In this document: piece after piece, positions 14,850 to 64,000 of the stretch | Layout: each line of letters starts with the position of its first letter | How positions within the stretch are numbered: the stretch's first letter is position 1 | Assembly (NCBI GenBank): GCA_052426225.1 | Contig: JBNJNM010000021.1 | Span: forward strand, 2,046,001 to 2,110,000 | Direction: 5' to 3' | Source of the DNA: Zancudomyces culisetae HAW-14-8 | Taxonomy: Eukaryota; Fungi; Kickxellomycota | DNA: 64,000 nt | Made by a program: the position numbers and the translations under genes | Notes under the pieces: model-generated | The model's input: only the letters and a program-made list of their open reading frames with translations | What the model was told of the DNA's origin: nothing | The model's database searches: none

Positions 14850-15173
14850 CTAAGGTTTTAGAAAGTGCTACTCATATTCATAATTATTGCGAGATACACC
14901 AGAATACATCACAGTTGTTGTATCTTGCGAGTATTACATTTTCATGTTCACTCAATTGTATTTACCCAGCTCCTATTCATCCTTTGTTTACAATCCTATC
15001 AAGCCATATTTATTCTCACAGCAATAAAATTACTGTGAAAACGAGGAACTTGGGTGCGAAAATTAATATCCCGAATTTCCATTCCATTTCTCAAAAATAC
15101 AGTTCCTTGGTATTTTGCCATTCCCAAATACTCAACCCAAAATACTGCTCTAAATCATCCTACCAAATGTAAA

Positions 15174-17654
15174 ATGTACTACTCGACAGCTTCAAGTAAC
15201 CAGCTACACGAACACACTCCGTACATACTTTCAAGTAACGAACTGGATACTCAAGTGCAAAATCTAGTTGAGGTAATAGTAGAATCGTTTATCGACGTTT
15301 GGTTTGCTGAAATAAGCAAGGACAAACGTTTTCAACTTGAGGTTACGAGTTTATTCAAAAAATGTATCCAAAAACTCGAGAAACGTGTCAGGAGGGTGGA
15401 GTGGACAAGGTATATTTTATATGATTTGGTAACAATAATCCAAACACATATCCAAGAAGTACATAACTGCGAAGCACGTCTGAACACTATCTATGCAGGT
15501 TCAGCAACTTCGATTGAAGAGTTATTTGCAAAGCGTATGCCTCATGTGGCTTTAACTGATACAGCTAATTCTGAACTGCTATATCTACGAACCTTAACAA
15601 CTCATATTTTACAACTTGTCTTGGAGCCTGAAACCATGGCAGATAAAACAGCTTTTCACTTGGTAAAGGAGATAGTGGCATGCACAGTTATTCGAAACTT
15701 ACTTGATAGCTTTACTGAACCCGAGTTTATCTACACACTGATATTGAAAGTATGTGGTTCGTTCTCGAAAAACCCATATTTCAGCCAACTTGATATGAGT
15801 AGGTATGTAACGGTTATATTTCAAGACGGATCGAGCAATAATAGTAAGGATGCTGATAGTAATAGTAATACCAATAGTGATTCTGGCAACATGAAAAACT
15901 ATAACAGCAATAAAAATACCCAGAATTATACTACTAACACCGGTACTACTGGATCACAAAACAAGTACAGTAGAAATGTATCAAGTTCAAACAAACAGCC
16001 AAGGACCGTGGAGCAAATGATGGATGAGGCAATGTCAACGAACATGATGGATGATCGCGGTAAAAATTATGGTGCTAGTGATAAACACAATATAGGGATG
16101 CTAAGAGCACATAGACTTAATAGACTCTACAAATCCAAATCCGACACTAATCTACACAACAAAATAATTCCCCAACACGACAATACAAATACAACTACAA
16201 ATATAAAGGGAAATAGAAATAAACTCACAACCGCAACCACAAGCGCAAATCCAACTAAAAGTAAAGAACGAGAAAGTAAAGTGTCAAGAAAGACCGGATT
16301 TATGAAGTTGCGGGTTGATAACACATTGGAATTAAAAACCACAGCGATGAAGAAACGAGTAGTCGAAAAATCAACCAAACTCTACAAGACTACAACGAGC
16401 TGGTTAAACATAATATTCATTTTGTATCCACTCAAACTTTACGTGGTTATATTATATGTGTGTAAAGCAGGATACAATATTGTAAAGATAAAGGCCAAAC
16501 AGTGTATAGACTATGTATTTGCATTTAGTTGGGAAAAGCGAAAGTTGGAGCTACAGAAGCTATCAACAGCAAATTTTTACTATTCATTGTTTAGTAGTTC
16601 AACCAATGTGATTGCTGGAGGAGAGGTATGGAAAGATAGGTATGGTAAAACAGATGATGATATGGATGGTTGTGACAGAGGTAGAGGGAAACTTAACATT
16701 AATCGACAAAACAAGGGGTACAGGGAGAGTAAAAACGATAAAGTATATGCAAAAACAAAAACAGGAGTTAAACTTGAGGTTACAACTAGCGTTAAACATG
16801 GTGCTAAAAATGGTGTTAAAGATAGTGTTAAAAGTTGTGTTAAAGGCGGTGTTAAAAATGGGATTAAAAATATACACTCAAATGACGATTCCAGTCTCGG
16901 AAAGTATAGTATTTTTGCAAAAAAGATAATAAACAGCAGAGTTATGAATAAAGTGGCTTCACTCAACCAGTTTATTCTTGAAAAGTTGAAAAGTTATCTG
17001 TTCATAACATACTATTATGACAAAATCAATACGCTAGTTGATACAAACTACAGTGGTCCCCGACTAGACAAGACTGGAGACGCAAGTAAACAACTGTTGG
17101 TGTTATTTGACAGTGTGTTTATGGCTAGCAAATTTAATCCTTGGTTAATGGCACAAATCAGGTATTATCTATTTCCACTTTATGTTGTGTTGGTTGGAAA
17201 GTTGGTAGATCAAGTGATATACAACAAACTCGGAACATTGTTTTTGAATTCCAAATGTATTTCTGGAATTGTGGCAGGGATTAGTGACAAATTATCAAGC
17301 ATGAAGGGAACGAAATCAAAAGAGTTGGTGACCGAGGAACAGCGAAAGTTGCTTAAGCAGGATGTGGTGAAACTGGTAGATGAGCTGATGCCAATGGGGT
17401 TAAAGGTGCTTTTCTACAACAATAAACAAGGTAAAAGATGGGGTGCAAAGCAGAGTGAGATGCATAATGAGATGCAGAGTAAGACTAAGGATGAGGATAC
17501 AGATGGAAGCAGGAACGGCGATGGAACTGGGAGCCAACTCGCAGTTGAAAAGATACTGAGTGTTGTGCAAAACCAAAAAGTAAATAAATATCTGGCTTAT
17601 TGCATTATTGACAGCCTAGTATCTCAACTGTTTCCAGAGCTTATTGGCACGTGA
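15174..17654 (+). CDS. PXA-domain protein (sorting-nexin/Mdm1-related N-terminal domain), copy 1
   Basis: ELDTQVQNLVEVIVESFIDVWFAEISKDKRF...HVAL...ELLYLRTLTTHILQLVL...LVKEIVACTVI is PXA-like. C-terminal VVQNQKVNKYLAYCIIDSLVSQLFPEL resembles the nexin C-terminus. First in-frame ATG is at 15174. Confidence 0.8.
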   Translation: MYYSTASSNQLHEHTPYILSSNELDTQVQNLVEVIVESFIDVWFAEISKDKRFQLEVTSLFKKCIQKLEKRVRRVEWTRYILYDLVTIIQTHIQEVHNCEARLNTIYAGSATSIEELFAKRMPHVALTDTANSELLYLRTLTTHILQLVLEPETMADKTAFHLVKEIVACTVIRNLLDSFTEPEFIYTLILKVCGSFSKNPYFSQLDMSRYVTVIFQDGSSNNSKDADSNSNTNSDSGNMKNYNSNKNTQNYTTNTGTTGSQNKYSRNVSSSNKQPRTVEQMMDEAMSTNMMDDRGKNYGASDKHNIGMLRAHRLNRLYKSKSDTNLHNKIIPQHDNTNTTTNIKGNRNKLTTATTSANPTKSKERESKVSRKTGFMKLRVDNTLELKTTAMKKRVVEKSTKLYKTTTSWLNIIFILYPLKLYVVILYVCKAGYNIVKIKAKQCIDYVFAFSWEKRKLELQKLSTANFYYSLFSSSTNVIAGGEVWKDRYGKTDDDMDGCDRGRGKLNINRQNKGYRESKNDKVYAKTKTGVKLEVTTSVKHGAKNGVKDSVKSCVKGGVKNGIKNIHSNDDSSLGKYSIFAKKIINSRVMNKVASLNQFILEKLKSYLFITYYYDKINTLVDTNYSGPRLDKTGDASKQLLVLFDSVFMASKFNPWLMAQIRYYLFPLYVVLVGKLVDQVIYNKLGTLFLNSKCISGIVAGISDKLSSMKGTKSKELVTEEQRKLLKQDVVKLVDELMPMGLKVLFYNNKQGKRWGAKQSEMHNEMQSKTKDEDTDGSRNGDGTGSQLAVEKILSVVQNQKVNKYLAYCIIDSLVSQLFPELIGT

Positions 17655-17910
17655 AAACGGGAATACGCGTTATAAATGGGCAGTAAGCAATAAAAAGTGA
17701 CTGAGTGGTAGACACATTCGTAGTCTTATACAACCAGAGCTGCTGCATTTGATTATAATTGTTTGTATTTTTATCCATGGTGGTTTATCAAGGCTATTTT
17801 GATTGTTTTTAGTGGTTTTGTACGATATTTTGTGGGTGGGTTATATATAGAATAGCCAGAGTAAACAGAATAGATGGAATAAAAGTGAATGTAGATATTT
17901 GGGTTTGGTG

Positions 17911-18080
17911 GTTAGGTAGTTAGGTGGTTTGGTAGTTAGGTAGTTTGGTAGTTAGGTAGTTAGGTAGTTAGGTAGTTAGGTAGTTAGGTAGTTAGGTAGT
18001 TAGGTAGTTAGGTAGTTAGGTAGTTAGGTAGTTAGGTAGTTAGGTAGTTAGGTAGTTAGGTAGTTGGGTAGTTAGGTAGT
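17911..18080 (+). repeat. 8-bp tandem repeat (TTAGGTAG)n, ~21 units, upstream of PRP4
   Basis: Read directly; 170 bp with a few variant units. Confidence 0.95.
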
Positions 18081-18287
18081 CTAGTTTGGGATTTCGATTC
18101 CAGATAATTCGATTCGAAATATTTTTCGTGATAATTGTGTTCATTTTTCACAAATCACTTTATTATACTAATATCATTCTGGTTTTACAGCCTTTTAGCA
18201 AAATATCAAGGCCAAAAGTACTAATTCTCTACTTCAAAATCGTTTAAAAAATACAAGTATACTCTCCTGTATTTATACCCTTGTAAA

Positions 18288-20121
18288 ATGGAAAATGACG
18301 AAAATCAACGAATATATTTTGGGAGTCTCGAGCACACTCTTCTAGATCGCCAAAATGACAACCATGAGCAAGATGAAACCGGAATTGATTTGGACGAACT
18401 AAGTGAGTTGTTGGTTGTAAACCTTAGAGCTGAGGGTTTCTAGTTTTTCTCTAACATGATATTATAAAAGTAGACTTATATACATAGCTCGATGTAACAA
18501 GAAAGCTAATTTTTCACATAAATCTTTTTAGGTGAAGCAAGCGACAGAGAATTGACTGAAATACAACTACAGGCCAAACAGGAACAGCAAGCACTACTGA
18601 ACGAGTTTGAGAGGCGGGAGGCGGCTCGAAAAATAGCAGTTCCTACCGAGGATCTCAAAGTTCGATTGAAGTTGCGAGAATATGGCGAACCCACCTGTCT
18701 GTTTGGAGAAGGGGTAAGATTTATATTGTTGCTGTGTAAAATAGTTGGAATATATTACAACATATGCAATCTTGTGGTAGTGGAGTTTTTATAATAATCA
18801 AAGTTGAGATATTTGATAAAATGAATTGAAACTGAATAATAAATAGCCTGGTGATAGAAGGGATCGATTGAGAGTAATAATGTCACAAAAACTGCTAGAA
18901 AATCAAGAAGTGCCTGAATCAGAGTCTAGTGTGAGTTTTTCTCGGAATATTGATGAAATTATACAGTTGTTTACACTTGAAAATACTTAATTATACAAAC
19001 TATACACATAGGAAAGTGAAGCAGAGCAAAACGAAGAGTTTTATACAGAGGGACCGCCTCAGCTAATGTTTGCACGTAGAAAAATGGCGGTATATTCACT
19101 ATCAAAGGCACGAGATCGTGTCAAGTCTCAAAAAAAATACACCGAAGTACCTCTAGCTCTGATTAAATCATCCCGAAAATCACTATTTGATAGATTTAGG
19201 AATTACACAGTTTATTCATCAGAGTACGGGGATTTACGACCATTGAGTTGTATAAAGTTTTCACCTAACCAACAAATATTGGCTACTGGATCATGGTCCG
19301 GAATTGTCAAGTTGTGGGATACAAAGTCATCACAGCAGCTGAACACATTGAAAGGCCATAATGATAAAATTGGAGGAATCTCATTTCATCCTCAATCAAC
19401 CATCAATCTTGATGAAACAGCAGCAAATATTGCAACAGGTAGTACAGACAACACAATCAAGCTCTGGAGTTTAGAATCACAGAAGCCACCAGTGGGTCAA
19501 CTGGTTGGCCATATGGCAAGAGTAGTGCATATTGATCATCACCCAATGGGGTCATATTTGGCTAGTGCGAGCTATGATGGTAGTTGGCGATTGTGGGACA
19601 TAGAAAGCTGTAAGGAGTTGTGTTTGCAAGAGGGACACTCACGCCAAGTACATGTTGTGAAATTTCAGGGTGATGGATCATTATTGGCAAGCGCGGGGCT
19701 GGATGGGATAGGAAGAGTGTGGGATATTCGGACGGGAAAATCAGCAATGACATTGACAGGACATATGGGAGAGATATACACAGTTGATTGGTCACAGAAT
19801 GGATATGTTATTGGGACAGGAGGCGGTGATAATTCAGTTAGGATTTACGATATTCGGGCATTGAAACAAACATATTCACTTCCAGCACATAATTCTATAA
19901 TATCACAGATGTGTTACTTGAAGAATGGAGTGAATACGTCTACAGAAGTGTTGGTTACAAGTTCATTTGACGGCTCAATCAAGGTATGGAGTGGTGTTGA
20001 TTACAAATTGATAAATACATTACACGGACATGAAGGAAAAGTGATGGGTGTGGATGTATCTAGCGAGTATATAGCATCATGCGGTTATGATAGATCGTTT
20101 AAGTTGTACGGTCAAAGTTGA
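18288..20121 (+). CDS. PRP4: U4/U6 snRNP WD40 protein Prp4, copy 1 (exons ~18288-18402, 18532-18713, 18847-18930, 19012-20121)
   Basis: SFM/PRP4 motif ([36 protein letters not shown]), then EEFYTEG, then WD40 repeats (ATGSWSG, LASASYDGSWRLWD, QEGHS, GRVWDIRTG). Introns are GT-AG. Confidence 0.93.
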
Positions 20122-20993
20122 GATGTTTTTCTTGCTAGCGATTTTTCAACGATGTTATATAGCATTCTAAAGCATTTGTATAATAAAGAAATGGATAATT
20201 GCTAAGTGTAGCAGTCAATGCTGTGGTGGGTGAAGATAGAAAAGAAAGTGTTGATGTAATGTGGAAATTTGTAAGAGACAGATCTATCAATGGTCAGAAA
20301 GTATGATTTAGTATTTAATGGGTGTTCGAATCATAGTTCTGAATTGAGACCCGTGTTTTTTGCTTTCAAACACCCATATACATGAATAAAAAAGTTGTAA
20401 TGTTATTGAGGTGGATGCTGACACGTTTTTTGCATCCATATATGATTTGCTCAATTTACAGGATAATAGCAAAAGCCAATATTTTCTTTAAATGTGATTG
20501 AGTATGTGAACATCAATCAGAGCAAATCAAATAGCCGATTTGCAAACGAGAAATTGTTGGCCATATTGTAAAAAAAGAAAATATTTGGGTAATTGCAGAG
20601 AAATTATTGGATGGAGTTGCCCAACCATCATGATCCAGCAAAGCTTTCACCCACGAGTTGGATTCAAAACCTGAAAATAATTGCGCTACACTCGCTTTAA
20701 CAGCCTTTTATCAACTATCCTAACAGCTTTGATATCCACTCTAATACATTTTATACCAAGTTTTGATAACGGAATCACGACTTTTTGGAGTATATATGTT
20801 CGAAAAATAGAATACGGAATAAGACATACACCAGTGATTTACACACTCGATTGTTTATTCATTCAGTTCTAGATTTGGTATTAAATAATATAATCACCAA
20901 CTCGACAAATCCTGACACGACTTCTTGTTTGGTTACACACCTTTGAAAGTAGACTTGAAATATTTCGAAAAGTAACAATACGCACTCGAAAGC

Positions 20994-22038
20994 ATGCTTG
21001 AGCAGTATACCAACTATGTAAGTACAACTATTATACTAGTAGCGTATTTGAAACAATAAACAACACCATAAAATTACTAACAAGTTCGCTTGTTTTACAC
21101 ACTGTAGATTTTATATGGCGTGGCACTTGCCAGCGCTAGATTTATAATACAAATATATGACTTGGAAAACCCTGCCAATATTCCGTAAGTTTGAAGTATT
21201 TATTTTTCATACTCTACTCATATTATTTGGGCTATGTGTATGTTGGTACTTATTTAGTTTGGATTTTTAAATCATTTTTACTATTGTTTACAAATTATGT
21301 ATTAAAGAAAGAGTCAAATTTAGCAATATGTAGCTAATCTGGATAAACTATACTAGATACATGAGACTTGCATTCATATCATCAGGTATATTGTACTATG
21401 GCCTTTCAGCCGTCCTTCAACAAAGTATCAATGAAGAAAACGATTTGAGACCATTTGAGTACGAAAATCCCGATCCAAATCAACCACCGATAGTTACTAC
21501 ATACAGAGACTATGATGTGGGAGAGGCAAACAAACAGCGTATACATACAGTATTACTGATTTTGGTAGCAGGAGTTTTACACTGGATATTTAGATTCAAC
21601 CAGCCATTGGTAGTCCAAACTATAATGATTAATTTGGCGTTGGTATCAAGCCCATGTTTCAGGGTTCATGTATTCAATACACCACAAACAGGAGTGTTGG
21701 TGAGACCATGGAAATCCAAAAATATATTGGGGTGAGTAATTTTATGATTGATAAATAATGGGTTTGTTTAAATATATTTTTATGGTATGGTATGGTATGG
21801 TATGGTATGGTATGGTATGGTATGGTATGGTATGATACAAATACTGCCATATAATATAGATGATGGCTACTATATGTAATTGTACAATATCGTTATATAA
21901 AATAGATTTTTGGATGTGTTTACTAGTCGTATCCTGACAACAGGACCAGTGAGAAGAATTGATCCTAGTATTGAAATGGAAAAAGAGGACAAAGGTGATG
22001 GGAGTCAGAATGTATCCGAGTTAAAAAAAGATAAATGA
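20994..22038 (+). CDS. PHO88: Pho88/Snd3-family ER membrane protein, copy 1, 4 exons
   Basis: Spliced translation includes DLENPANIPYMRLAF...INEENDLRPFEY...VTTYRDYD...LHWIFRFNQPLVVQ...RVHVFNTPQTGVLVRPWK, matching the Pho88 pattern (NDxT.xxY, TT.RDYD, H....TNPL..Q, G.L.RPF/WK). Confidence 0.82.
21781..21834 (+). repeat. (TATGG)n microsatellite in PHO88 intron 3
   Basis: About 10-11 units read directly. Confidence 0.95.
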
Positions 22039-23641
22039 AAATGAGAAACCACTCGAATACCCAACTAGAAATAGTCAGTTTTTACTGTACTTTATATCCA
22101 CTTTATTTAGAGGGGATACATCTTAACTACCAATAATATATTATAATTATAGAGTTTTGTTTTGATTTGGTGAATATAATCTTGTCTAGTTCAAAGCTGG
22201 TGTATTTTCTGGTTGATTAAATATTTAGAGCTACATTTAAACTGCCATATTTTGGATATGAAGGGAGAATAAGTGAGCGAGGGTGATAGTGGGTATTATA
22301 TTGGAGTTTATACAAGATGAGTTGGAATGGCTAGTTTCTATTGATACAACATAGTACTCCATTTCCTACTTTCTTTAAATATAACCAGTGGTTAACACTA
22401 AAACTGGGTATTCCAGAGAATGTTTGTTGGGTATTTTTACGTCTTCACTGTATCTAGCCCGTGTTCATTTCACTTCTTTCTTTATATCACTTGGTATTTT
22501 TTATTGGGGATAATTATTATTTTGACAGAGTATACCGATATTTCATGATATTAATACTTTTATCAATTTACGATTATGAAAACCTGTAATTGTCACTACA
22601 CACATCATTGCTTACTTTTATGTTTTCTTGGCAATGTAAAAATCCAAGCATTGGTGGGTATTGGTGGGTATTGGCAAAAGTGTTTTTCTTTGGCTATTTA
22701 AACCCAAAAGACTCGTTACCCTCTGTAACGCAGCAAAGAATAAGCGACTTTAAGATATGTTAGGATAGATGTTCTTAAATATCGGATTTTATGAAAACCG
22801 AAAAGGTGTACTGGATGCAATAAATACACATCTGTTATTGGTTGAAACGCTTTTTATAGATATCATCAGACGTCATATTACACATCCAGAAAAATGCGTA
22901 TAACACTCTGTGGCTGTAATCCAGATATTAAGAAGCTTAATCACTCTTATTTCCAAATAAAAAAGGTGGGTTTTTTTGTATTGTTCGGTACTAGTTCAAT
23001 CGCACAACCAAGTTTTTAGCGCCTATTTAACAAATAAATAGTAATCGCAGATTATCTTGATAATTTTGAAGCAAGTCTGGACCATAAAAATAACACCAGG
23101 CTGCTAGCAATAAGAAACTCACTACAAAACTATCACACAGACTTGATGAAAACTGACAGTTTGTTTACAATAGTATAATTCCAATCAATGTAAAGTCATT
23201 TTTGTTGGGCTTGGGTCTTGAGAATAGTAAAGTTCAGAGTTATGAACTTGCGTTTTCCCCCAACAATTAAGAATAAAAGTTGTTTCTCAGCATTTATTTT
23301 TTAGGAGAGTACAGAAAACCCACCTATTCAAAACACAATTGGGGCTGGATTGTCACTCTACAATCCGAATAACATCAATGTTAATTATCTACGGTGTTGA
23401 AGCTATATAAAATCTATTTATTGAAGTGACCATTTAATATTTTAGTACTCCATCAATATTCATAAACAGTAATATCTACAGAGTATAATATACAACTCAA
23501 CACATGTAACGATTATCAGTAATTTAGAGAGTTTAGTTGATAAAAATAACAAGATGGTGGTGTATAGCAACACAGCAATACAGTTGACTATTCTAAAAAA
23601 ACCGTTCGTGTATTTTAAAAGTATTTTTTGCTAGTGTCCGT

Positions 23642-26600
23642 TCATACACACAAAAGTTCTAAACTTTTGTTTTCTCTTTCTGCACGTTGACAAAGCTCAA
23701 TTAAATCTTTATCACTTAGGTCTTTTGCAACCCTCATAATCCATTCCCTGTGCGCACTTGCATCAACACCATACTTTATCAACAAATTGATCATTTCTAC
23801 ATTTCCGTGTTTCACTGCCTCTTTAAGCCCATAATCTTTTTTTAGTACCAAGTTTGGATTTCTTTTCAGCAAGAGTCTCAGCATTTCCAAATTATTATTC
23901 TCACACGTCTGAACCACCCCACTATCACATCCCCTTTTTACCTTTAGCCCCTTTTCAAACAACAGCTTCAGAATTTCTAAGCTATTATTTCTACAGGCAT
24001 AGAATACGAAATCCAATTCGTTATTTTCAAGCGTAGTCGTATCTTTCAAAAGCAATTTAGTTGCCTCTAGTTTGTCATTCAGAATAGCAGATTCGAGTAG
24101 GCGAGAGACTCCACCAAGCTCAGGGCAATAGTTCAATATTAACTGTAGAGTTTCAATATTGTCTAAGTTAGGATAATCTTTAATGTAATATGAATATTTA
24201 TCAATTTTTACACCATGTTCCAACAATAATCTGACCATCTCAATATTATTTGCTTTGAGTGGTACATCTAGAATATTAGTGTAGTCCATAACACTTAGCC
24301 CATTCTCCAAAAGTAGTTTTACCACCTCAATATTTCCCATCTGCACAGCAAATTCTGCTATTTCACCAGCATCATTGAGATCAATCTTATAAGTCAGCAG
24401 TAACTTTAATATTTCAATGTTATTTGTTTTAATTGCAGTGTTTATCCCATATAACAGATCGCCATTCTGGATGGGTTTACCCCTATCAAGTAGTATTTTA
24501 GTGATCCTGTATTCTTTAGAACAAACGGTGTTTTCATGACCCAAGAATAAATCATGTTGTAATTCCCCTTCCTTTGTATCTGTTTTATCTTTTTTTTGTA
24601 ATACTCCCAAACCAACATAATACGCAAGAATTGTCTTCACCAACCTAATGTCTTCAATTAAACACGCATACTCTAATTGGTATCTACAAAGATATCCTAC
24701 AACAGCATTGTTATCCAAGAGATATTTCAGAGTTTTCTTGAAACCCAGTCTACATGAAATCCTAATTCCATTTCGAGCTGGATCGCTCAACTCAACTCCA
24801 TCTTTTACTAATAATTTAACCATATCAAAATTACCTAGTAAACACGCCATGTTGATACAAGGATATTCTGGATTCTTGGGTACAACACCACCATTCTTCA
24901 TCCAGTGCTGCAAAACTTCAACTTTATCTGATTCACACGCCTGTTCAAACCCATCCGATTCATCTCTTAGTTTTGCACCTTTACTGATAAAGTAATCTAT
25001 CCAATCAATATCACCTGCTTTGTATGCTGTTCTCAAGATTAAACTATCATGCGAATTGACACTCATTCCATTCTCTATTAACAGTTTCAACATTTTAAAG
25101 TTTCGGTCCACCAATTCTGACTTTGCTAGCTCATAATGCTCATCATTTAATAGCTCTACATTTTTCTCGTTTTCTGACTCGTTGGTTTCACAGTGTTCAG
25201 TGTTGTTGAATGTTATTTCTGGGTCGTTTTCAAGAATATATTCAATAATCTCAACCACTTTATCGTAACAAGCTCTTTTACTTTTGTTGTTACAAGAAGG
25301 GTGTAAAAGAGTTGCAAAATATGATGCACATACATTGGTGATGTCCTTTTTTTTTGAGTTTGTACTTGTCATTATTTTCTCGTATAAATCCATATATTCA
25401 TAAAAATCATCAAGCTCGGCATTATCATTATATGCATCATATTTTTGATAAAGTCCAATAAGACACATTATTGTTTTACTAAATTTCAGTCTCGTTCCAA
25501 ATTTGAGTTTGTCTCCTAAAGTTTTACACTTAACCTTAAGCTTATCTTCTGAAAACATCAACAATCGTTCTGCTATTTGATAATTTTTAACACTACTCGA
25601 CTTTTCAATACCATGCTGAATATTTGGCTCAACAGAAGCACCATTTTCCAATAGCAATTGTAACACATTGATATCCTTTTTTTTGACGGCAATTAGTATT
25701 CCTTCAAAATGAGGTAATTTTAAATCCGCTCCAGATTCAACAAGTAGTTTTACAATTCTGGTATCTCCACTTTCCACAGCTTTCTCTAAACAATTAATAC
25801 TCACTATATTTGGATATCTATTTATGATTTCTAGCGCTAGTTTGTAGTCGTTCTCTTTTATAGCCGTTTTCAAAACTTTTTCGCTCAGATCCCCTTTCAA
25901 TTTATCACTGTGATTTAAAAGTAGTCTTATGAGATCAGTATTACCACTTTCGTATGCCACTTCTGTTATTTTTCTGATGTTTTCCGAGTCTAATTCAATT
26001 TTGAAAAAGTATTCCTTGACTAATACCCGATCTCTATGATAGACCGCTGCATCGAACAATATTTGTGCGTGTATACCGCTAAAGTAGTTATCTTTGAGAT
26101 ATGAGATAAAGCTTTTTATATTCAAAGAAATTGAATAATATACAACCAGCATGTATACCAACAACTCCATGTTATCCGTGTTTTTATATTGCATAATAAA
26201 AGTGTTAAAAGCTTCATCAATGGGATTATCACGAGATGCAGCAAATAGTTGTAGCTGTCTAAAAGAAAGGTCTGTGCTCATTTCCAGATCCAAAATTATT
26301 TTTAGCCATTCAAGATTGTGCAATTGACAGGTTTCATGTGCAGCCACTAATATACAACATATCATAAATTTGTCATCAATGCATCTAATATCTCTCCCGA
26401 TAGAACTACATATCTCTGGCGGAAACTCAAACCTAGTGTTACATATATTTATTAATAGTTCGATATCGTTTTCCCCAGCAATATTAACCATCTCGCGTAT
26501 TAAAAGTGATGAGGCATTGATTTTAGTTATTATTGGTTTAATACAGATATAATCAGAAACCCAAATGTCCGTTTCTTCTATTTGTGCTTTGTTTCCTTCT

Positions 26601-29385: not shown

Positions 29386-29781
29386 TTAACATTTACATCC
29401 AGATTCACAGTGACATTTCTCGCCTTTACTCTCCTTGCATTCACAGGTTGCTTGTTCACACGTACATGGTTCTCCACATGTACAACCTTTATCATCTCTG
29501 CACTGACATATACTTTTTCCTTCACACTTGCACTCATTCTCCCTGCAGATACACTTTTTACCTACTGAACACCTACAGAAGACACCAGCCTCCTTATTTT
29601 CAGCACAATTGCACTTTTCAGATTCACAACAACATTTTCCTTCAGAGGTGGCTGAACAACCTTGTCCCATCTTGCAGCAGCATTCACAATTTCCAACCTC
29701 ACATGAACACCGACCCCCGGGAGCATCTCTGCACTTTCCAATATCTTTGTTGTAACAGTCTTTCTTGTCGCATGAACTCAT
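29386..29781 (-). CDS. Long metallothionein-like Cys-rich protein (131 aa, 33 Cys), copy 1
   Basis: From the ATG of MSSCDKK: two CCC clusters, many CxC motifs, K/E/G-rich, almost no aromatic residues, no signal peptide. A TATAAATA box lies ~145 bp upstream. Confidence 0.8.
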   Translation of the reverse strand: MSSCDKKDCYNKDIGKCRDAPGGRCSCEVGNCECCCKMGQGCSATSEGKCCCESEKCNCAENKEAGVFCRCSVGKKCICRENECKCEGKSICQCRDDKGCTCGEPCTCEQATCECKESKGEKCHCESGCKC

Positions 29782-46827: not shown

Positions 46828-47058
46828 ATGGTAGAAGGTATATCTGTTTTAACAATCCTAACATCAATAATTCTAATCCAAAAGTGCACTGAACTAAGAA
46901 GGATTTCAAAAGCGATAAAAGAACAGTTAAAAAGTAACCGGGAGACCTCACAAAAATTAATTGAAAATATCGAACGGCTCAAATTAATTATTACTCAGTA
47001 TGGACTAGCAACTGTCGGATCACCTCTCAGCTATGTAAGCAAGCAGCAAATAAACTAG
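46828..47058 (+). CDS. Small orphan ORF (76 aa), copy 2
   Basis: Identical translation to 31784-32014. Confidence 0.3.
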   Translation: MVEGISVLTILTSIILIQKCTELRRISKAIKEQLKSNRETSQKLIENIERLKLIITQYGLATVGSPLSYVSKQQIN

Positions 47059-49137: not shown

Positions 49138-49533
49138 ATGAGTTCATGCGACAAGAAAGACTGTTACAACAAAGATATTGGAAAGTGCAGAGATGCTCCT
49201 GGGGGTCGGTGTTCATGTGAGGTTGGAAAGTGTGAATGCTGCTGCAAGAAGGGACAAGGTTGTTCAGCCACCTCTGAAGGAAAATGTTGTTGTGAATCTG
49301 AAAAGTGCAATTGTGCTGAAAATAAGGAGGCTGGTGTCTCCTGTAGGTGTTTAGTAGGTAAAAAGTGTATCTGCAGGGAGGATGAGTGCAAGTGTGAAAG
49401 AAAAAGTATATGTCAGTGCAGAGATGGTAAAGGTTGTACATGTGGAGAACCATGTACGTGTGAACAAGCAACCTGTGAATGCAAGGAGGGTAAAGGCAAC
49501 AAATGTCACTGTGAATCTGGATGTAAATGTTAA
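49138..49533 (+). CDS. Long metallothionein-like Cys-rich protein (131 aa, 33 Cys), copy 2
   Basis: Mirror of 29386-29781; 9 amino-acid differences, all Cys conserved. Confidence 0.8.
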   Translation: MSSCDKKDCYNKDIGKCRDAPGGRCSCEVGKCECCCKKGQGCSATSEGKCCCESEKCNCAENKEAGVSCRCLVGKKCICREDECKCERKSICQCRDGKGCTCGEPCTCEQATCECKEGKGNKCHCESGCKC

Positions 49534-54800: not shown

Positions 54801-55278
54801 GCTTGGTGGAGTCTCTCGCCTACTCGAATCTGCTATTCTGAATGACAAACTAGAGGCAACTAAATTGCTTTTGAAAGATACGACTACGCTTGAAAATAAC
54901 GAATTGGATTTCGTATTCTATGCCTGTAGAAATAATAGCTTAGAAATTCTGAAGCTGTTGTTTGAAAAGGGGCTAAAGGTAAAAAGAGGATGTGATAGTG
55001 GAGTGGTTCAGACGTGTGAGAATAATAATTTGGAAATGCTGAGACTCTTGCTGAAAAGAAATCCAAACTTGGTACTAAAAAAAGATTATGGGCTTAAAGA
55101 GGCAGTGAAACACGGAAATGTAGAAATGATCAAGTTGTTGATAAAGTATGGTGTTGATGCAAGTGCGCACAGGGAATGGATTATGAGGGTTGCAAAAGAC
55201 CTAAGTGATAAAGATTTAATTGAGCTTTGTCAACGTGCAGAAAGAGAAAACAAAAGTTTAGAACTTTTGTGTGTATGA
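51865..55278 (+). CDS. Intronless 1137-aa ankyrin-repeat protein, copy 2
   Basis: Mirror of 23642-27055; 16 amino-acid differences counted. Confidence 0.9.
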   Translation: MYFNKNSCAFNKLPGSVLSTIFVLAQNPQLSLLNKNMHYSSQQVSTISKYILQYILPCTGFLSQWRSRDIFESYTRIRANEAIGILVLRSIKNLDYGTALDMAFEYRWGNVVIKLLKMYVVIDKNTSKIMHKGTLFIKEGEYLDIDIENLFSEGNKAQIEETDIWVSDSICIKPIITKINASSLLIREMVNIAGENDIELLINICNTRFEFPPEICSSVGRDIRCIDDKFMICCILVAAHETCQLHNLEWLKRILDLEMSTDLSFRQLQLFAASRDNPIDEAFNTFIMQYKNTDNMELLVYMLVVYYSISLNIKSFISYLKDNYFSGIHAQILFDAAVYHRDGVLVKEYFFKIELDSENIRKITEMAYESGNTDLIRLLLNHSDKLKGDLSEKVLKTAIKENDYKLALEIINRYPNIVSINCLEKAVESGDTRIVKLLVESGADLKLPHFEGILIAVKKKDINVLQLLLENGASVEPNIQHGIEKSSSVKNYEIAERLLMFSEDKLKVKCKTLGDKLKFGTRLKFSKTIMCLIGLYQKYDAYNDNAELDDFYEYMDLYEKIMTSTNSKKKDITNVCASYFATLLHRSCNNQSKRACYDKVVEIIEYILENDPEITFNNTEHCETNESENEKNVELLNDEHYELAKSELVDRNFKMLKLLIENGMSVNSHDSLILRTAYKAGDIDWIDYFISKGAKLRDESDGFEQACESDKVEVLQHWMKNGGVVPKNPEYPCINMACLLGNFDMVKLLVKNGVDLSDPARNGIRISCRLGFKKTLKYLLDNNAAVGYLCRYQLEYACLIEDIRLVKTILVYYVGLGVLQKKDKTDTKEGELQHDLFLGHENTVCSKEYRITKILLDRGKPIQNGDLLYGINTAIKTNNIEILKLLLTYKIDLNDAGEIAEFAVQMGNIEVVKLLLENGLSVMDYTNILDVPLKANNIEMVRLLLEHGVKIDKYSYYIKDYPNLDNIETLQLILNYCPELGGVSRLLESAILNDKLEATKLLLKDTTTLENNELDFVFYACRNNSLEILKLLFEKGLKVKRGCDSGVVQTCENNNLEMLRLLLKRNPNLVLKKDYGLKEAVKHGNVEMIKLLIKYGVDASAHREWIMRVAKDLSDKDLIELCQRAERENKSLELLCV

Positions 55279-56891: not shown

Positions 56892-57934
56892 TCATTTATC
56901 TTTCTTTAACTCGGATACATTCTGACTCCCATCACCTTTATCCTCTGTTTCCATTTCAATACTAGGATCAATTCTTCTCACTGGCCCTGTTGTCAGGATA
57001 CGACTAGTAAACACATCCAAAAATCTATTTTATAACGATATTGTACAATTACATATAGTAGCCATCATCTATATTATATGGCAGTATTTGTATCATACCA
57101 TACCATACCATACCATACCATACCATACCATACCGTACCATACCATATAAATATATTTAAACAAATCCATTATTTATCAATCATAAAATTACTCACCCCA
57201 ATATATTTTTGGATTTCCATGGTCTCACCAACACTCCTGTTTGTGGTGTATTGAATACATGAACCCTGAAACATGGGCTTGATACCAACGCCAAATTAAT
57301 CATTATAGTTTGGACTACTAATGGCTGGTTGAATCTAAATATCCAGTGTAAAACTCCTGCTACCAAAATCAGTAATACTGTATGTATACGCTGTTTGTTT
57401 GCCTCTCCCACATCATAGTCTCTGTATGTGGTAACTATCGGTGGTTGGTTTGGATCGGGATTTTCGTACTCAAATGGTCTCAAATCGTTTTCTTCATTGA
57501 TACTTTGTTGAAGGACGGCTGAAAGGCCATAGTACAATATACCTGATGATATGAATGCAAGTCTCATGTATCTAGTATAGTTTATCCAGATTAATTACAT
57601 ATTGCTAAATTTGACTCTTTCTTTAATACATAATTTGTAAACAATAGTAAAAATGATTTAAAATTCCAAACTAAATAAGTACCAACATACACATAGCCCA
57701 AATAATATGAGTAGAGTATGAAAAATAAATACTTCAAACTTACGGAATATTGGCAGGGTTTTCCAAGTCATATATTTGTATTATAAATCTAGCGCTGGCA
57801 AGTGCCACGCCATATAAAATCTACAGTGTGTAAAACAAGCAAACTTGTTAGTAATTTTATGGCATTATTTATTGTTTCAAATACGCTACTAGTATAACAG
57901 TTGTACTTACATAGTTGGTATACTGCTCAAGCAT
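56892..57934 (-). CDS. PHO88: Pho88/Snd3-family protein, copy 2
   Basis: Mirror of 20994-22038 with intact splice sites. Confidence 0.82.
57094..57147 (-). repeat. (TATGG)n microsatellite, copy 2
   Basis: (CCATA)n on the + strand with one variant unit. Confidence 0.9.
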
Positions 57935-58806: not shown

Positions 58807-60640
58807 TCAACTTTGACCGTACAACTTAAACGATCTATCATAACCGCATGATGCTATATACTCGCTAGATACATCCACACCCATCACTTTTCCTTCATGT
58901 CCGTGTAATGTATTTATCAATTTGTAATCAACACCACTCCATACCTTGATTGAGCCGTCAAATGAACTTGTAACCAACACTTCTGTAGACGTATTCACTC
59001 CATTCTTCAAGTAACACATCTGTGATATTATAGAATTATGTGCTGGAAGTGAATATGTTTGTTTCAATGCCCGAATATCGTAAATCCTAACTGAATTATC
59101 ACCGCCTCCTGTCCCAATAACATATCCATTCTGTGACCAATCAACTGTGTATATCTCTCCCATATGTCCTGTCAATGTCATTGCTGATTTTCCCGTCCGA
59201 ATATCCCACACTCTTCCTATCCCATCCAGCCCCGCGCTTGCCAATAATGATCCATCACCCTGAAATTTCACAACATGTACTTGGCGTGAGTGTCCCTCTT
59301 GCAAACACAACTCCTTACAGCTTTCTATGTCCCACAATCGCCAACTACCATCATAGCTCGCACTAGCCAAATATGACCCCATTGGGTGATGATCAATATG
59401 CACTACTCTTGCCATATGGCCAACCAGTTGACCCACTGGTGGCTTCTGTGATTCTAAACTCCAGAGCTTGATTGTGTTGTCTGTACTACCTGTTGCAATA
59501 TTTGCTGCTGTTTCATCAAGATTGATGGTTGATTGAGGATGAAATGAGATTCCTCCAATTTTATCATTATGGCCTTTCAATGTGTTCAGCTGCTGTGATG
59601 ACTTTGTGTCCCACAACTTGACAATTCCGGACCATGATCCAGTAGCCAATATTTGTTGGTTAGGTGAAAACTTTATACAACTCAATGGTCGTAAATCCCC
59701 GTACTCTGATGAATAAACTGTGTAATTCCTAAATCTATCAAATAGTGATTTTCGGGATGATTTAATCAGAGCTAGAGGTACTTCGGTGTATTTTTTTTGA
59801 GACTTGACACGATCTCGTGCCTTTGATAGTGAATATACCGCCATTTTTCTACGTGCAAACATTAGCTGAGGCGGTCCCTCTGTATAAAACTCTTCGGTTT
59901 GCTCTGCTTCACTTTCCTATGTGTATAGTTTGTATAATTAAGTATTTTCAAGTGTAAACAACTGTATAATTTCATCAATATTCCGAGAAAAACTCACACT
60001 AGACTCTGATTCAGGCACTTCTTGATTTTCTAGCAGTTTTTGTGACATTATTACTCTCAATCGATCCCTTCTATCACCAGGCTATTTATTATTCAGTTTC
60101 AATTCATTTTATCAAATATCTCAACTTTGATTATTATAAAAATTCCACTACCACAAGTTTGCATATGTTGTAATATATTCCAACTATTTTACACAGCAAC
60201 AATATAAATCTTACCCCTTCTCCAAACAGACAGGTGGGTTCGCCATATTCTCGCAACTTCAATCGAACTTTGAGATCCTCGGTAGGAACTGCTATTTTTC
60301 GAGCCGCCTCCCGCCTCTCAAACTCGTTCAGTAGTGCTTGCTGTTCCTGTTTGGCCTGTAGTTGTATTTCAGTCAATTCTCTGTCGCTTGCTTCACCTAA
60401 AAAGATTTATATGAAAAATTAGCTTTCTTGTTACATCGAGCTATGTATATAAGTCTACTTTTATAATATCATGTTAGAGAAAAACTAGAAACCCTCAGCT
60501 CTAAGGTTTACAACCAACAACTCACTTAGTTCGTCCAAATCAATTCCGGTTTCATCTTGCTCATGGTTGTCATTTTGGCGATCTAGAAGAGTGTGCTCGA
60601 GACTCCCAAAATATATTCGTTGATTTTCGTCATTTTCCAT
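58807..60640 (-). CDS. PRP4: U4/U6 snRNP protein Prp4, copy 2
   Basis: Mirror of 18288-20121; the 351-aa WD40 ORF is identical. Confidence 0.93.
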
Positions 60641-60847: not shown

Positions 60848-61041
60848 ACTACCTAACTACCCAACTACCTAACTACCTAACTACCTAACTACCTAACTAC
60901 CTAACTACCTAACTACCTAACTACCTAACTACCTAACTACCTAACTACCTAACTACCTAACTACCTAACTACCTAACTACCAAACTACCTAACTACCTAA
61001 CTACCAAACTACCTAACTACCAAACCACCTAACTACCTAAC
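60848..61041 (-). repeat. (TTAGGTAG)n tandem repeat, copy 2, ~24 units
   Basis: (CTACCTAA)n on the + strand; 24 bp (3 units) longer than the left copy. Confidence 0.95.
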
Positions 61042-61297
61042 CACCAAACCCAAATATCTACATTCACTTTTATTCCATCTATTCTGTTTACTCTGGCTAT
61101 TCTATATATAACCCACCCACAAAATATCGTACAAAACCACTAAAAACAATCAAAATAGCCTTGATAAACCACCATGGATAAAAATACAAACAATTATAAT
61201 CAAATGCAGCAGCTCTGGTTGTATAAGACTACGAATGTGTCTACCACTCAGTCACTTTTTATTGCTTACTGCCCATTTATAGCGCGTATTCCCGTTT

Positions 61298-63778
61298 TCA
61301 CGTGCCAATAAGCTCTGGAAACAGTTGAGATACTAGGCTGTCAATAATGCAATAAGCCAGATACTTATTTACTTTTTGGTTTTGCACAACACTCAGTATC
61401 TTTTCAACTGCGAGTTGGCTCCCAGTTCTATCGCCGTTCCTGCTTCCATCTGTATCCTCATCCTTAGTCTTACTCTGTATCTCATTATGCATCTCACTCT
61501 GCTTTGCACCCCATCTTTTACCTTGTTTATTGTTGTAGAAAAGCACCTTTAACCCCATTGGCATCAGCTCATCTACCAGTTTCACCACATCCTGCTTAAG
61601 CAACTTTCGCTGTTCCTCAGTCACCAACTCTTTTGATTTCGTTCCCTTCATGCTTGATAATTTGTCACTAATCCCTGCCACAATTCCAGAAATACATTTG
61701 GAATTCAAAAACAATGTTCCGAGTTTGTTGTATATCACTTGATCTACCAACTTTCCAACCAACACAACATAAAGTGGAAATAGATAATACCTGATTTGTG
61801 CCATTAACCAAGGATTAAATTTGCTAGCCATAAACACACTGTCAAATAACACCAACAGTTGTTTACTTGCGTCTCCAGTCTTGTCTAGTCGGGGACCACT
61901 GTAGTTTGTATCAACTAGCGTATTGATTTTGTCATAATAGTATGTTATGAACAGATAACTTTTCAACTTTTCAAGAATAAACTGGTTGAGTGAAGCCACT
62001 TTATTCATAACTCTGCTGCTTATTATCTTTTTTGCAAAAATACTATACTTTTCGAGACTGGAATCGTCATTTGAGTGTATATTTTTAATCCCATTTTTAA
62101 CACCGCCTTTAACACAACTTTTAACACTATCTTTAACACCATTTTTAGCACCATGTTTAACGCTATTTTTAACCTCAAGTTTAACTCCTGTTTTTGTTTT
62201 TGCATATACTTTATCGTTTTTACTCTCCCTGTACCCCTTGTTTTGTCGATTAATGTTAAGTTTCCCTCTACCTCTGTCGCAACCATCCATATCATCATCT
62301 GTTTTACCATACCTATCTTTCCATACCTCTCCTCCAGCAATCACATTGGTTGAACTACTAAACAATGAATAGTAAAAATTTGCTGTTGATAGCTTCTGTA
62401 GCTCCAACTTTCGCTTTTCCCAACTAAATGCAAATACATAGTCTATACACTGTTTGGCCTTTATCTTTACAATATTGTATCCTGCTTTACACACATATAA
62501 TATAACCACATAAAGTTTGAGTGGATACAAAATGAATATTATGTTTAACCAGCTCGTTGTAGTCTTGTAGAGTTTGGTTGATTTTTCGACTACTCGTTTC
62601 TTCATCGCTGTGGTTTTTAATTCCAATGTGCTATCAACCCGCAACTTCATAAATCCGGTCTTTCTTGACACTTTACTTTCTCGTTCTTTACTTTTAGTTG
62701 GATTTGCGCTTGTGGTTGCGGTTGTGAGTTTATTTCTATTTCCCTTTATATTTGTAGTTGTATTTGTATTGTCGTGTTGGGGAATTATTTTGTTGTGTAG
62801 ATTAGTGTCGGATTTGGATTTGTAGAGTCTATTAAGTCTATGTGCTCTTAGCATCCCTATATTGTGTTTATCACTAGCACCATAATTTTTACCGCGATCA
62901 TCCATCATGTTCGTTGACATTGCCTCATCCATCATTTGCTCCACGGTCCTTGGCTGTTTGTTTGAACTTGATACATTTCTACTGTACTTGTTTTGTGATC
63001 CAGTAGTACCGGTGTTAGTAGTATAATTCTGGGTATTTTTATTGCTGTTATAGTTTTTCATGTTGCCAGAATCACTATTGGTATTACTATTACTATCAGC
63101 ATCCTTACTATTATTGCTCGATCCGTCTTGAAATATAACCGTTACATACCTACTCATATCAAGTTGGCTGAAATATGGGTTTTTCGAGAACGAACCACAT
63201 ACTTTCAATATCAGTGTGTAGATAAACTCGGGTTCAGTAAAGCTATCAAGTAAGTTTCGAATAACTGTGCATGCCACTATCTCCTTTACCAAGTGAAAAG
63301 CTGTTTTATCTGCCATGGTTTCAGGCTCCAAGACAAGTTGTAAAATATGAGTTGTTAAGGTTCGTAGATATAGCAGTTCAGAATTAGCTGTATCAGTTAA
63401 AGCCACATGAGGCATACGCTTTGCAAATAACTCTTCAATCGAAGTTGCTGAACCTGCATAGATAGTGTTCAGACGTGCTTCGCAGTTATGTACTTCTTGG
63501 ATATGTGTTTGGATTATTGTTACCAAATCATATAAAATATACCTTGTCCACTCCACCCTCCTGACACGTTTCTCGAGTTTTTGGATACATTTTTTGAATA
63601 AACTCGTAACCTCAAGTTGAAAACGTTTGTCCTTGCTTATTTCAGCAAACCAAACGTCGATAAACGATTCTACTATTACCTCAACTAGATTTTGCACTTG
63701 AGTATCCAGTTCGTTACTTGAAAGTATGTACGGAGTGTGTTCGTGTAGCTGGTTACTTGAAGCTGTCGAGTAGTACAT
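61298..63778 (-). CDS. PXA-domain protein, copy 2
   Basis: Mirror of 15174-17654, same length (2481 bp), 7 amino-acid differences. Confidence 0.8.
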   Translation of the reverse strand: MYYSTASSNQLHEHTPYILSSNELDTQVQNLVEVIVESFIDVWFAEISKDKRFQLEVTSLFKKCIQKLEKRVRRVEWTRYILYDLVTIIQTHIQEVHNCEARLNTIYAGSATSIEELFAKRMPHVALTDTANSELLYLRTLTTHILQLVLEPETMADKTAFHLVKEIVACTVIRNLLDSFTEPEFIYTLILKVCGSFSKNPYFSQLDMSRYVTVIFQDGSSNNSKDADSNSNTNSDSGNMKNYNSNKNTQNYTTNTGTTGSQNKYSRNVSSSNKQPRTVEQMMDEAMSTNMMDDRGKNYGASDKHNIGMLRAHRLNRLYKSKSDTNLHNKIIPQHDNTNTTTNIKGNRNKLTTATTSANPTKSKERESKVSRKTGFMKLRVDSTLELKTTAMKKRVVEKSTKLYKTTTSWLNIIFILYPLKLYVVILYVCKAGYNIVKIKAKQCIDYVFAFSWEKRKLELQKLSTANFYYSLFSSSTNVIAGGEVWKDRYGKTDDDMDGCDRGRGKLNINRQNKGYRESKNDKVYAKTKTGVKLEVKNSVKHGAKNGVKDSVKSCVKGGVKNGIKNIHSNDDSSLEKYSIFAKKIISSRVMNKVASLNQFILEKLKSYLFITYYYDKINTLVDTNYSGPRLDKTGDASKQLLVLFDSVFMASKFNPWLMAQIRYYLFPLYVVLVGKLVDQVIYNKLGTLFLNSKCISGIVAGISDKLSSMKGTKSKELVTEEQRKLLKQDVVKLVDELMPMGLKVLFYNNKQGKRWGAKQSEMHNEIQSKTKDEDTDGSRNGDRTGSQLAVEKILSVVQNQKVNKYLAYCIIDSLVSQLFPELIGT

Positions 63779-64000
63779 TTTACATTTGGTAGGATGATTT
63801 AGAGCAGTATTTTGGGTTGAGTATTTGGGAATGGCAAAATACCAAGGAACTGTGTATTTTTGAGAAATGGAATGGAAATTCGGGATATTAATTTTCGCAC
63901 CCAAGTTCCTCGTTTTCACAGTAATTTTATTGCTGTGAGAATAAATATGACTAGGTAGGATTGTAAACAAAGAATGAATAGGAGCTGGGTAAATACAATT

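Follow-up and report, generated by a model that had tools for sequence, protein, structure and literature searches.

The 64,000 nucleotides of DNA of the mosquito-gut fungus Zancudomyces culisetae HAW-14-8 that we analysed (contig JBNJNM010000021.1, positions 2,046,001 to 2,110,000; hereafter the window) carry a gene-bearing palindrome, which measures 57.6 kb in total when the neighbouring DNA is added and runs on beyond the window end, with two inverted arms of 24.2 kb each. The palindrome is very probably a genuine and old inverted segmental duplication whose arms have been kept alike by gene conversion, with the exception of an island in the 3' part of the protein O-mannosyltransferase gene PMT4.

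Within the window, an inverted-repeat search and self-BLAST matched 14954-30586 with 64000-48349 (98.7% identity, 148 mismatches and 10 gaps) and, in the inner arm, 30580-34837 with 48262-44005 (99.55%). The full arms (Table 1) were set by self-BLAST of contig positions 2026001-2130000 and by arm-to-arm alignment. An earlier note on this DNA had placed the left boundary at 14954, which is merely the mirror image of the window end, the true start being 10684; its sizes of at least 49 kb for the palindrome and about 20 kb for each arm were likewise underestimates, and its unique core of 9.2 kb is borne out. At both ends the arm boundaries can be placed to within a few bases, and the flanks outside the arms are unique and different from each other, homology stopping abruptly there. 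Outside the 1.7-kb island, the arms are 99.1% identical (0.87% difference). The HAW-14-8 assembly contains just two copies of the arm block, and the locus is internal, at 2.05-2.11 Mb on a 3.43-Mb contig.

Table 1. Features of the palindrome, in window coordinates (L, left arm; R, right arm).
Feature	Left arm or single position	Right arm	Strand	Basis or remark
Left arm	10684-34837 (contig 2056684-2080837; 24,154 bp)			Self-BLAST, arm alignment
PMT4-L main ORF	12429-14615		+	Pfam PMT and PMT_4TMC; gene model starts at ~12142
Divergence island, 3' two-thirds of PMT4 (1.7 kb)	12880-14590		+	Arm alignment
PXA-domain (sorting-nexin-like) gene	15054-17654	61298-63970	L +; R -	Pfam PXA, E=1e-37
8-bp tandem array	17903-18080 (22.2 copies)	60848-61049 (25.2 copies)
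PRP4 (U4/U6 snRNP WD40 protein), last exon	19066-20121	58807-59862	L +; R -	WD40 families
PHO88 exon	21361-21735	57193-57567	L +; R -	Pfam Pho88
Ankyrin-repeat protein, 1137 aa	23642-27055	51865-55278	L -; R +	Pfam Ank families
Cys-rich metallothionein-like ORF, 145 aa	29386-29823	49096-49533	L -; R +	Translation
SNP-free tract, 2,950 bp, mostly non-coding	30751-33701	45141-48091 (mirror)		Arm alignment
Secreted-type Cys-containing ORF, 159 aa	34239-34718	44124-44603	L +; R -	Translation
Unique spacer, 9,167 bp	34838-44004			Left part non-coding with repeats, then DPP3 and VPS16
Dispersed non-coding repeat	35370-36217			47 or more matches in the genome (66-91% identity), often close to contig ends
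DPP3 (M49 peptidase) ORF	37824-38774		-	Pfam M49
VPS16 ORF	40001-41748		-	Pfam Vps16_N/C
Right arm		44005-68269 (contig 2090005-2114269)		Self-BLAST, arm alignment; last 4.3 kb past window
PMT4-R		64339-66525	-	Right arm, outside window; frame open

The spacer is single copy in the genome, one dispersed family excepted, and the other copies of this family (that of 35370-36217) contain no long ORF. No Rfam families were found across the window and, as the earlier note had observed, no transposase or recombinase is visible, at least among ORFs of 110 aa or more; the inner arms and the left spacer nevertheless carry dispersed non-coding repeat families. The block exists in two copies only, these lie 9.2 kb apart, and neither short inverted repeats nor microhomology mark the ends of the spacer; the locus thus has neither the inverted triplication of an ODIRA product nor the spacer-less form of a fold-back.

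Seven genes are duplicated with frames open in both arms, namely PMT4, the PXA-domain gene, PRP4, PHO88, the ankyrin-repeat gene, the metallothionein-like ORF and the 159-aa ORF, so that the duplication of intact genes claimed previously holds, the number being seven and not six. The first five of these are ordinary cellular genes, and to describe the block as a metal/stress accessory cluster, as had been done, overstates the case. The copies differ to varying degrees: those of PRP4 by 1 nt and 0 aa (in strain COL-18-3, the annotation places the PRP4 domain PF08799 on the exon upstream), those of PHO88 by 3 nt and 0 aa, those of the ankyrin-repeat gene by 24 nt and 16 aa (dN/dS ~0.5), and those of the metallothionein-like ORF, located where SNPs between the arms are dense, by 14 nt and 11 aa (dN 0.037, dS 0.013). 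Both PXA-domain copies are intact, since the 2-nt indel between them is upstream of the first shared ATG. The 159-aa ORF is part of a dispersed gene family, whose unit here (34051-34831) stops 6 bp short of the inner edge of the arm, and the exact proteins of this and of a 150-aa ORF are not on record in other assemblies.

Near-identical inverted arms might result from an assembly artefact, in which two alleles or haplotypes, or a fold-back chimera, were misjoined, possibly round a heterozygous DPP3-VPS16 inversion, and the divergence between the arms is indeed of the same order as that between strains in unique DNA (0.65-1.0%). However, the arms lose homology abruptly where two distinct unique flanks begin, a point beyond which alleles would remain homologous; the spacer is a unique and gene-bearing segment rather than a zero-length fold-back; and no haplotigs of the region were found elsewhere in the HAW-14-8 assembly. 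Further, typical HiFi reads are far longer than 2.95 kb, the longest SNP-free run between the arms, and the arms can therefore be phased by such reads. The HAW-14-8 assembly was made from PacBio HiFi data, and the palindrome is not mentioned in the paper describing it (PMC12611240).

Further evidence against an artefact comes from an independent short-read assembly of a second strain, COL-18-3 (Illumina/Ray, 500-bp insert library; PMC5026252), in which both flank-arm junctions and the VPS16-side junction are present with identical breakpoints. The left outer junction is crossed gap-free by contig LSSK01001233.1 and the right outer junction by LSSK01000197.1, and LSSK01000220.1 spans 34907-44004 and then runs on into the arm, with the right inner junction (44004/44005) the same to the base. 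Three of the four junctions are thus confirmed; at the fourth, the left inner one, the COL-18-3 contig stops 70 bp before it, and no crossing contig was found among the COL-18-3 contigs reached. The junction contigs end either 1-1.2 kb inside the repeat or at this point 70 bp before it, and the COL-18-3 arms are collapsed over ~20 kb. Both types of PMT4 island are also present in COL-18-3, on separate contigs, and each is ~99% conserved. Because COL-18-3 shows three junctions gap-free together with both PMT4 versions, an artefact is very unlikely, and the reading of the arms as two alleles of one region is contradicted by these junctions and by the different flanks. The inverted repeat reported in the earlier note is therefore real, being found in two strains and with two technologies.

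The second strain also allows the history of the arms to be considered. Outside the island, the two arms of HAW-14-8 differ by 0.87%, about half of their distances from COL-18-3 (1.79% for the left arm and 1.76% for the right). Consistent with this, 266 sites have the same state in both arms and another in COL-18-3, compared with 88 and 81 that are private to one arm (p<1e-21); since the COL-18-3 arms are collapsed, most of these site patterns are unphased, whereas the distance inequality is robust to collapse. In the outer 977 bp, where four phased sequences could be compared, five informative sites group by strain and none by arm. Since the arms are closer to each other than to COL-18-3 and the phased sites are strain-wise, the arms evolve in concert through arm-to-arm gene conversion, in keeping with the conversion-maintained locus that had been proposed from the window alone. 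The density of SNPs between the arms is over-dispersed (index 3.15, p=1e-11), and the SNP-free tract has no differences between the arms, where the chance expectation of such a run is ~2e-9, with 115 differences (3.95%) between HAW-14-8 and COL-18-3; it is a recent multi-kb conversion tract. Between this tract and the inner junction, at 33701-34837, there are 15 arm-specific variants. The strain divergence of this tract, about 4%, is higher than the genic baseline of 0.65-1% and near that of other non-coding DNA here (2.9%).

Alternatively, the palindrome might be young and without ongoing conversion, starting from two old PMT4 paralogs that had already diverged and stood in inverted orientation, with the near-identical DNA around them produced by large-scale copying in one or two recent steps (e.g., break-induced replication) and the ~1% divergence reflecting merely the time since then. 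A single recent event would likewise yield ~99% identity, homogeneous DNA flanks the island on both sides, and the junctions do not reveal the mechanism of formation. However, the same junctions are found in both strains, so such an event would predate their split, whereas the distance between the arms is only half that of either arm from the other strain. Strain-wise grouping where phase is available, the tract that differs nowhere between the arms but by 4% between the strains, and the strongly heterogeneous SNP density also argue against it. In addition, the 5' edge of the island is a mosaic, with codons 281-360 having a dS of 0.16, between a stretch with dS 0.39 and saturation, as expected from repeated conversion tracts. 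We therefore consider a young palindrome unlikely, and return to repeated conversion as the preferred explanation.

The exception to this homogeneity is PMT4. PMT4-L encodes a protein O-mannosyltransferase of the PMT4 subfamily and matches the annotated PMT4 of Z. culisetae at 99% identity, and both PMT4-L and PMT4-R have open frames, although their proteins are only 78% identical to each other. The divergence is concentrated in the island, which comprises the end of the PMT domain, the MIR region and the C-terminal 4-TM region. Across the island, which is 2.2 kb from the outer flank, the two arms align at 73-86% identity and free of indels, and the divergence breaks off at the stop codon. The proportion of fourfold-degenerate sites that differ between the copies is 0.456 at codons 361-720 vs 0.012 at codons 1-200, and the island as a whole has a dS of ~1.0 and a dN of ~0.20 (dN/dS ~0.2). 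These values show that both copies are under purifying selection and that synonymous sites of the island are near saturation, and the presence of both island types in COL-18-3 shows that the island is older than the split of the two strains. The earlier suggestion that the arms let gene copies diverge thus has a clear case in PMT4. In phylogenetic analysis, PMT4-L and PMT4-R are sisters inside the Zancudomyces branch (support 1.0), with PMT4-R evolving faster (49 vs 22 unique changes, p=0.0014). A foreign origin of the island is unsupported, since the two copies are sisters, and conversion by a third PMT paralog was also rejected, the other paralogs in the genome being only 30-35% identical. 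Conversion into the island would be either removed by selection, with two functionally distinct PMT4 'tails' attached to a common catalytic 'head', or now blocked by accumulated mismatch, and a mismatch barrier alone could maintain it.

The gene order of Furculomyces gives an indication of how the palindrome may have formed. There the order is PHO88-DPP3-X-VPS16-PMP3-CYB5-PMT4-PRP4-PXA, all in single copy, so that four of the five ordinary arm genes are single-copy neighbours of the spacer genes. The left arm shares with Furculomyces both its outer end (the CYB5-PMT4 adjacency) and its inner end (the PHO88-to-DPP3 order). Because it keeps these ancestral neighbours, the left arm is judged to be ancestral and the right arm the derived copy. 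The synteny of Smittium megazygosporum was uninformative, with PMT4 at a contig start and unrelated neighbours. The 1242-aa gene in the right flank was considered as an ortholog of the VPS16-adjacent gene of Furculomyces, which would fix the insertion point, but the two have no similarity, and the right-flank gene has no Pfam match. Very probably, the seven-gene 24.2-kb block was copied in inverted orientation to the far side of the adjoining DPP3-VPS16 segment, and intrachromosomal conversion with tracts of up to several kb has since repeatedly overwritten one arm with the other, giving ~99.1% identity, while the PMT4 3' island would have been spared by selection against conversion or by the mismatch block. 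Under this model, crossovers between the arms would be expected to invert the core occasionally.

A regulated form of such inversion can also be envisaged, in which the locus is a programmed switch and inter-arm recombination flips the core and changes expression, as in mating-type (MAT) switching of methylotrophic yeasts; outer crossovers would also swap the PMT4 islands between the flanks. The geometry, with 24-kb arms of 99% identity round a 9-kb core, permits this, one further locus bracketed by inverted repeats was verified next door, and in Candida albicans far shorter inverted repeats are known to give rise to inversions (PMC6591007). However, the Pfam scan, which covered 18 ORFs and left out four smaller window ORFs of 115-129 aa, gave no recombinase, MAT-type or regulatory match, and in particular no HMG, homeodomain or recombinase domain that would mark orientation-dependent regulatory or cell-identity genes in the core or arms; the core genes VPS16 and DPP3 are housekeeping genes; and the human Y palindrome P6 shows frequent conversion and rare inversion (PMC3723533). 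No inversion isomer was seen. The sole apparent hint of one, a COL-18-3 scaffold in which the right flank is linked to PMT4-L, was rejected. The join consists of 439 N and falls where the arms are identical over 2.2 kb, the sequences on its two sides share an overlap of 228 identical bases, a single A10 run is the breakpoint of all three contigs, and the insert size of the library is 500 bp; the join therefore carries no phase information. A programmed switch is therefore improbable.

Inverted repeats round a core are also the geometry of centromeres of the Schizosaccharomyces pombe, Candida tropicalis or Komagataella type, and AT-rich DNA (27-33% GC) that is poor in genes and contains dispersed repeats makes up the inner arms and the left spacer. 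However, rather than being gene-free, the core and arms hold nine or more conserved genes whose frames are open and constrained, and the dispersed repeats, instead of marking one site per chromosome, are found in many copies on each contig, with an excess towards contig ends. It is hard to believe that this locus is a centromere.

The old, conversion-maintained duplication that we prefer has counterparts elsewhere, and the locus is a fungal example of a known structure, the palindrome of the Y-chromosome type. Human Y P6 has arms of ~110 kb. Like the mammalian sex-chromosome palindromes (human Y P1-P8; for P6 see PMC3723533), the Zancudomyces locus has long inverted gene-bearing arms and a unique spacer, multi-kb conversion tracts, and arms that are closer within a lineage than orthologous arms are between lineages. 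Unlike them, it belongs to a fungus (Zoopagomycota) and lies in an ordinary chromosome interior, not on a sex chromosome that lacks recombination; its arms are smaller (24 kb) and less similar (99.1% vs >99.9%), and they include an old island, under selective constraint, that is exempt from conversion.

Among organelles, the plastid inverted repeats IRa and IRb flank the small single-copy region, are ~25 kb long, are homogenised by conversion and exist as flip-flop isomers. The present locus similarly has inverted arms of about this length round a single-copy core, but it is nuclear rather than part of a multicopy organelle, its arm identity is lower, and it contains an internal divergence island, of which we know no example in plastid inverted repeats. 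Among yeasts, the MAT inverted repeats of Ogataea polymorpha and Komagataella phaffii are ~2 kb long, and the arms described here are about ten times longer and contain housekeeping genes. The MAT repeats similarly bracket a segment of ~10-20 kb, which is invertible by homologous recombination (PMC5720833, PMC6692504), whereas the Zancudomyces locus has no MAT or regulatory genes and no known silencing centromere or telomere as a neighbour. The long inverted repeats of C. albicans are also fungal, contain ORFs, have high identity, lie on one chromosome and are substrates for recombination and inversion, but they measure 65-6,499 bp (Todd et al. [quoted passage not shown]

More tentatively, the locus might be a long-lived palindrome partitioned by selection, with a shared PMT4 'head' and two selected 'tails' (MIR and C-terminal), core-flipping crossovers and perhaps a place among many invertible loci in the genome. 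The PMT4 subfamily normally works as a homodimer. If this possibility were true, conversion would keep 22 kb identical, the N-terminal catalytic third of PMT4 among them, while the MIR and C-terminal modules were kept distinct, giving two PMT4 isoforms, e.g., for different substrates or as a heterodimer.

For the biology of Zancudomyces, the palindrome means a lineage-specific duplication of PMT4, in which the 5' third is shared and the 3' two-thirds have diverged, and a doubled dose of PRP4 and PHO88, both single copy in Furculomyces. It also means that the old reference collapses the locus and that annotation pipelines will treat it wrongly. Sex chromosomes provide the best-known large palindromes maintained by conversion; this one occupies an ordinary position in a culturable early-diverging fungus, and with two sequenced strains it is a natural system in which conversion can readily be measured relative to mutation. 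It also shows how a stable island of divergence is carved out of a homogenising repeat by selection or by mismatch barriers.

In the window, an inverted-repeat search and self-comparison gave two inverted matches around a unique spacer of 9,167 bp, and self-comparison after 20 kb had been added on either side yielded the full arm extents listed in the table, for a whole palindrome of 57.6 kb. The large inverted repeat described in the earlier note is thus present, but it exceeds the ~20-kb arms and at least 49 kb claimed there, and the proposed left limit at 14954 is not a real boundary but the mirror of the window end. The limits are sharp at both boundaries, left and right flanking DNA being unrelated, and junction comparison found no inverted repeat or microhomology common to the two spacer ends.

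Features of the palindrome and its surroundings (positions beyond 64000 lie past the window end; C21, contig of the HAW-14-8 assembly)
Feature	Left or single position	Right position	Detail
Arm	10684-34837	44005-68269	24.2 kb each
Inverted match, outer	14954-30586	64000-48349	98.7%
Inverted match, inner	30580-34837	48262-44005	99.55%
PMT4 divergence island	~12880 to stop codon		73-86% left/right identity, zero indels
8-bp tandem array	17903-18080	60848-61049	22.2 vs 25.2 copies
Metallothionein-like ORF	29386-29823 (-)	49096-49533 (+)	145 aa, Cys-rich
Dispersed non-coding families	29901-30470; 32200-32900; 35370-36217 (spacer)		about 14 to 47 genomic matches, 66-91% identity
Family unit with 159-aa ORF	34051-34831		paralogs elsewhere, 70-78% identity
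93-bp segment		near 48350	right arm only
Right-flank gene		68669-72397 (-)	1242 aa
Second inverted pair	73907-76617 (C21:2119907-2122617)	87772-90481 (C21:2133772-2136481)	2,711 bp, 99.67% identical

An ORF and domain survey found seven genes per arm, one above the minimum of six in the earlier note, encoding PMT4, a PXA-domain protein, PRP4, PHO88, a 1137-aa ankyrin protein, the metallothionein-like ORF and a 159-aa secreted-type ORF. Every reading frame is open in both arms, those of PRP4 and PHO88 included, as had been noted; near the PXA ORF there is a 2-nt indel that precedes the first shared ATG. The metallothionein-like copies differ at 14 nt, 11 of them amino-acid-changing (dN 0.037, dS 0.013); the plus-strand ORF called mechanically at 29367-29819 is probably not genuine. 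Within the spacer, DPP3 (M49 peptidase) and VPS16 are both encoded on the minus strand. The old public annotation of the second strain, COL-18-3, under-reports this locus: no gene is called at the PXA-domain ORF (LSSK01001687.1:1166-4729; 866-890 aa in HAW-14-8), and PMT4-R, the right copy, is cut to 343 aa at a contig end.

Of the dispersed families, the spacer repeat has 47 or more matches across the genome; many of these are near contig ends, and because of this enrichment it looks subtelomere-like, though the copy here is mid-chromosome. Further such families are found in the inner arms. The unit holding the 159-aa ORF, several of whose paralogs also lie near contig ends, stops 6 bp from the inner boundary of the arm, and therefore a member of this family may have been the marker or the seed of the duplication breakpoint. 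No Rfam family was matched. A short near-direct repeat bounds the 93-bp segment. The product of the right-flank gene is a lineage-specific protein with many copies of a Lys-rich motif ending 'YC' and no Pfam family. The second inverted pair lies only 5.6 kb beyond the right end of the large palindrome and brackets 11.15 kb; COL-18-3 contig LSSK01000197.1 stops 650 bp within it.

The HAW-14-8 assembly was built from PacBio HiFi reads with hifiasm (26 contigs, 27.2 Mb, >48x depth), and the word "palindrome" is absent from the paper describing it (PMC12611240). It is very improbable that the structure is an assembly artefact, for example two alleles wrongly joined, since alleles would stay homologous beyond 10684 and 68269, where homology stops, and this assembly holds no additional copy or haplotig of the region. 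Further, nowhere are the arms free of arm-specific differences for more than 2.95 kb, a length far below that typical of a HiFi read.

The older COL-18-3 assembly (GCA_001969505.1; 2x150-bp reads, 500-bp-insert library, Ray assembler; PMC5026252) served as an independent witness. Both outer junctions are crossed without gaps, the left by LSSK01001233.1, which runs from the flank into 977 bp of arm and then stops, and the right by LSSK01000197.1, with 1.2 kb of arm. LSSK01000220.1 extends from 34907 through the spacer and across 44004/44005, a junction that is the same to the base, into ~15.6 kb of arm (to ~59580); its other end lies 70 bp before the left inner junction, in otherwise unique DNA. 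Both types of the PMT4 island are present, the right type joined to PXA and PRP4 on LSSK01001687.1 and the left type on LSSK01000197.1. Contigs stopping just within the repeat, one collapsed arm copy and two island versions are the expected short-read output for a true near-identical duplication, and the palindrome is real. The one apparent hint of an inversion isomer, a COL-18-3 scaffold combining the right flank with left-type PMT4, was rejected as evidence, as its N-gap join falls inside the identical zone and has no phasing power.

The arms are maintained by conversion, as had been proposed. Outside the island they differ at 0.87% of sites, whereas each HAW-14-8 arm differs from COL-18-3 at 1.76-1.79%; at 266 sites both arms agree and COL-18-3 differs, against 88 and 81 arm-private sites. 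Unless conversion acts, the distance between paralogs cannot fall below that to any mosaic built from the arms of the other strain, and therefore this result holds despite the collapsed COL-18-3 arms. Differences are over-dispersed (index 3.15, p=1e-11), and 30751-33701 has zero between arms but 3.95% (115 sites) from COL-18-3. In the outer 977 bp, where the COL-18-3 arms are assembled separately, each anchored to its own flank, there are five parsimony-informative sites, and each of them unites arms of the same strain, with none pairing left with left or right with right. Since the breakpoints are common to both strains, the duplication is older than their split, with homogenisation continuing afterwards.

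Zancudomyces culisetae belongs to the Harpellales and is a gut symbiont of mosquito larvae. Furculomyces boomerangus has one single-copy cluster, PHO88-DPP3-X-VPS16-PMP3-CYB5-PMT4-PRP4-PXA, and therefore the CYB5-PMT4 adjacency at the left outer junction and the PHO88-then-DPP3 order from left arm to spacer are ancestral. Both junctions of the right arm are derived, and the duplication is confined to the Zancudomyces lineage.

The view that the arms let copies diverge is borne out by the 3' two-thirds of PMT4, where orthologs are far closer than paralogs (each island type is ~99% conserved between strains), opposite to the remaining arm. Codons 201-720 have dS ~1.0 and dN ~0.20 (dN/dS ~0.2), and 46% of fourfold-degenerate sites differ in codons 361-720 versus 1.2% in codons 1-200. 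At its 5' edge the island is a mosaic that includes a patch of low divergence (codons 281-360); the 3' edge is abrupt, at the stop codon. The two copies are sisters inside the Zancudomyces branch, other PMT paralogs having only 30-35% identity, and the derived right copy evolved faster (49 unique changes vs 22, p=0.0014). The simplest reading is an old duplication in which the 3' part of PMT4 escaped homogenisation; selection may have favoured two distinct MIR and C-terminal modules, or a mismatch barrier may have reinforced itself.

Like sex-chromosome palindromes (PMC3723533), the structure behaves as conversion-maintained, but it lies at an ordinary site inside a fungal chromosome, is less homogeneous and contains a divergence island under constraint. 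Compared with the repeats catalogued in C. albicans (65-6,499 bp; PMC6591007), the arms are nearly four times the length of the largest. The genes that define MAT flip-flop loci are absent. The palindrome of Z. culisetae is a real and well characterised member of an already known class of structure.
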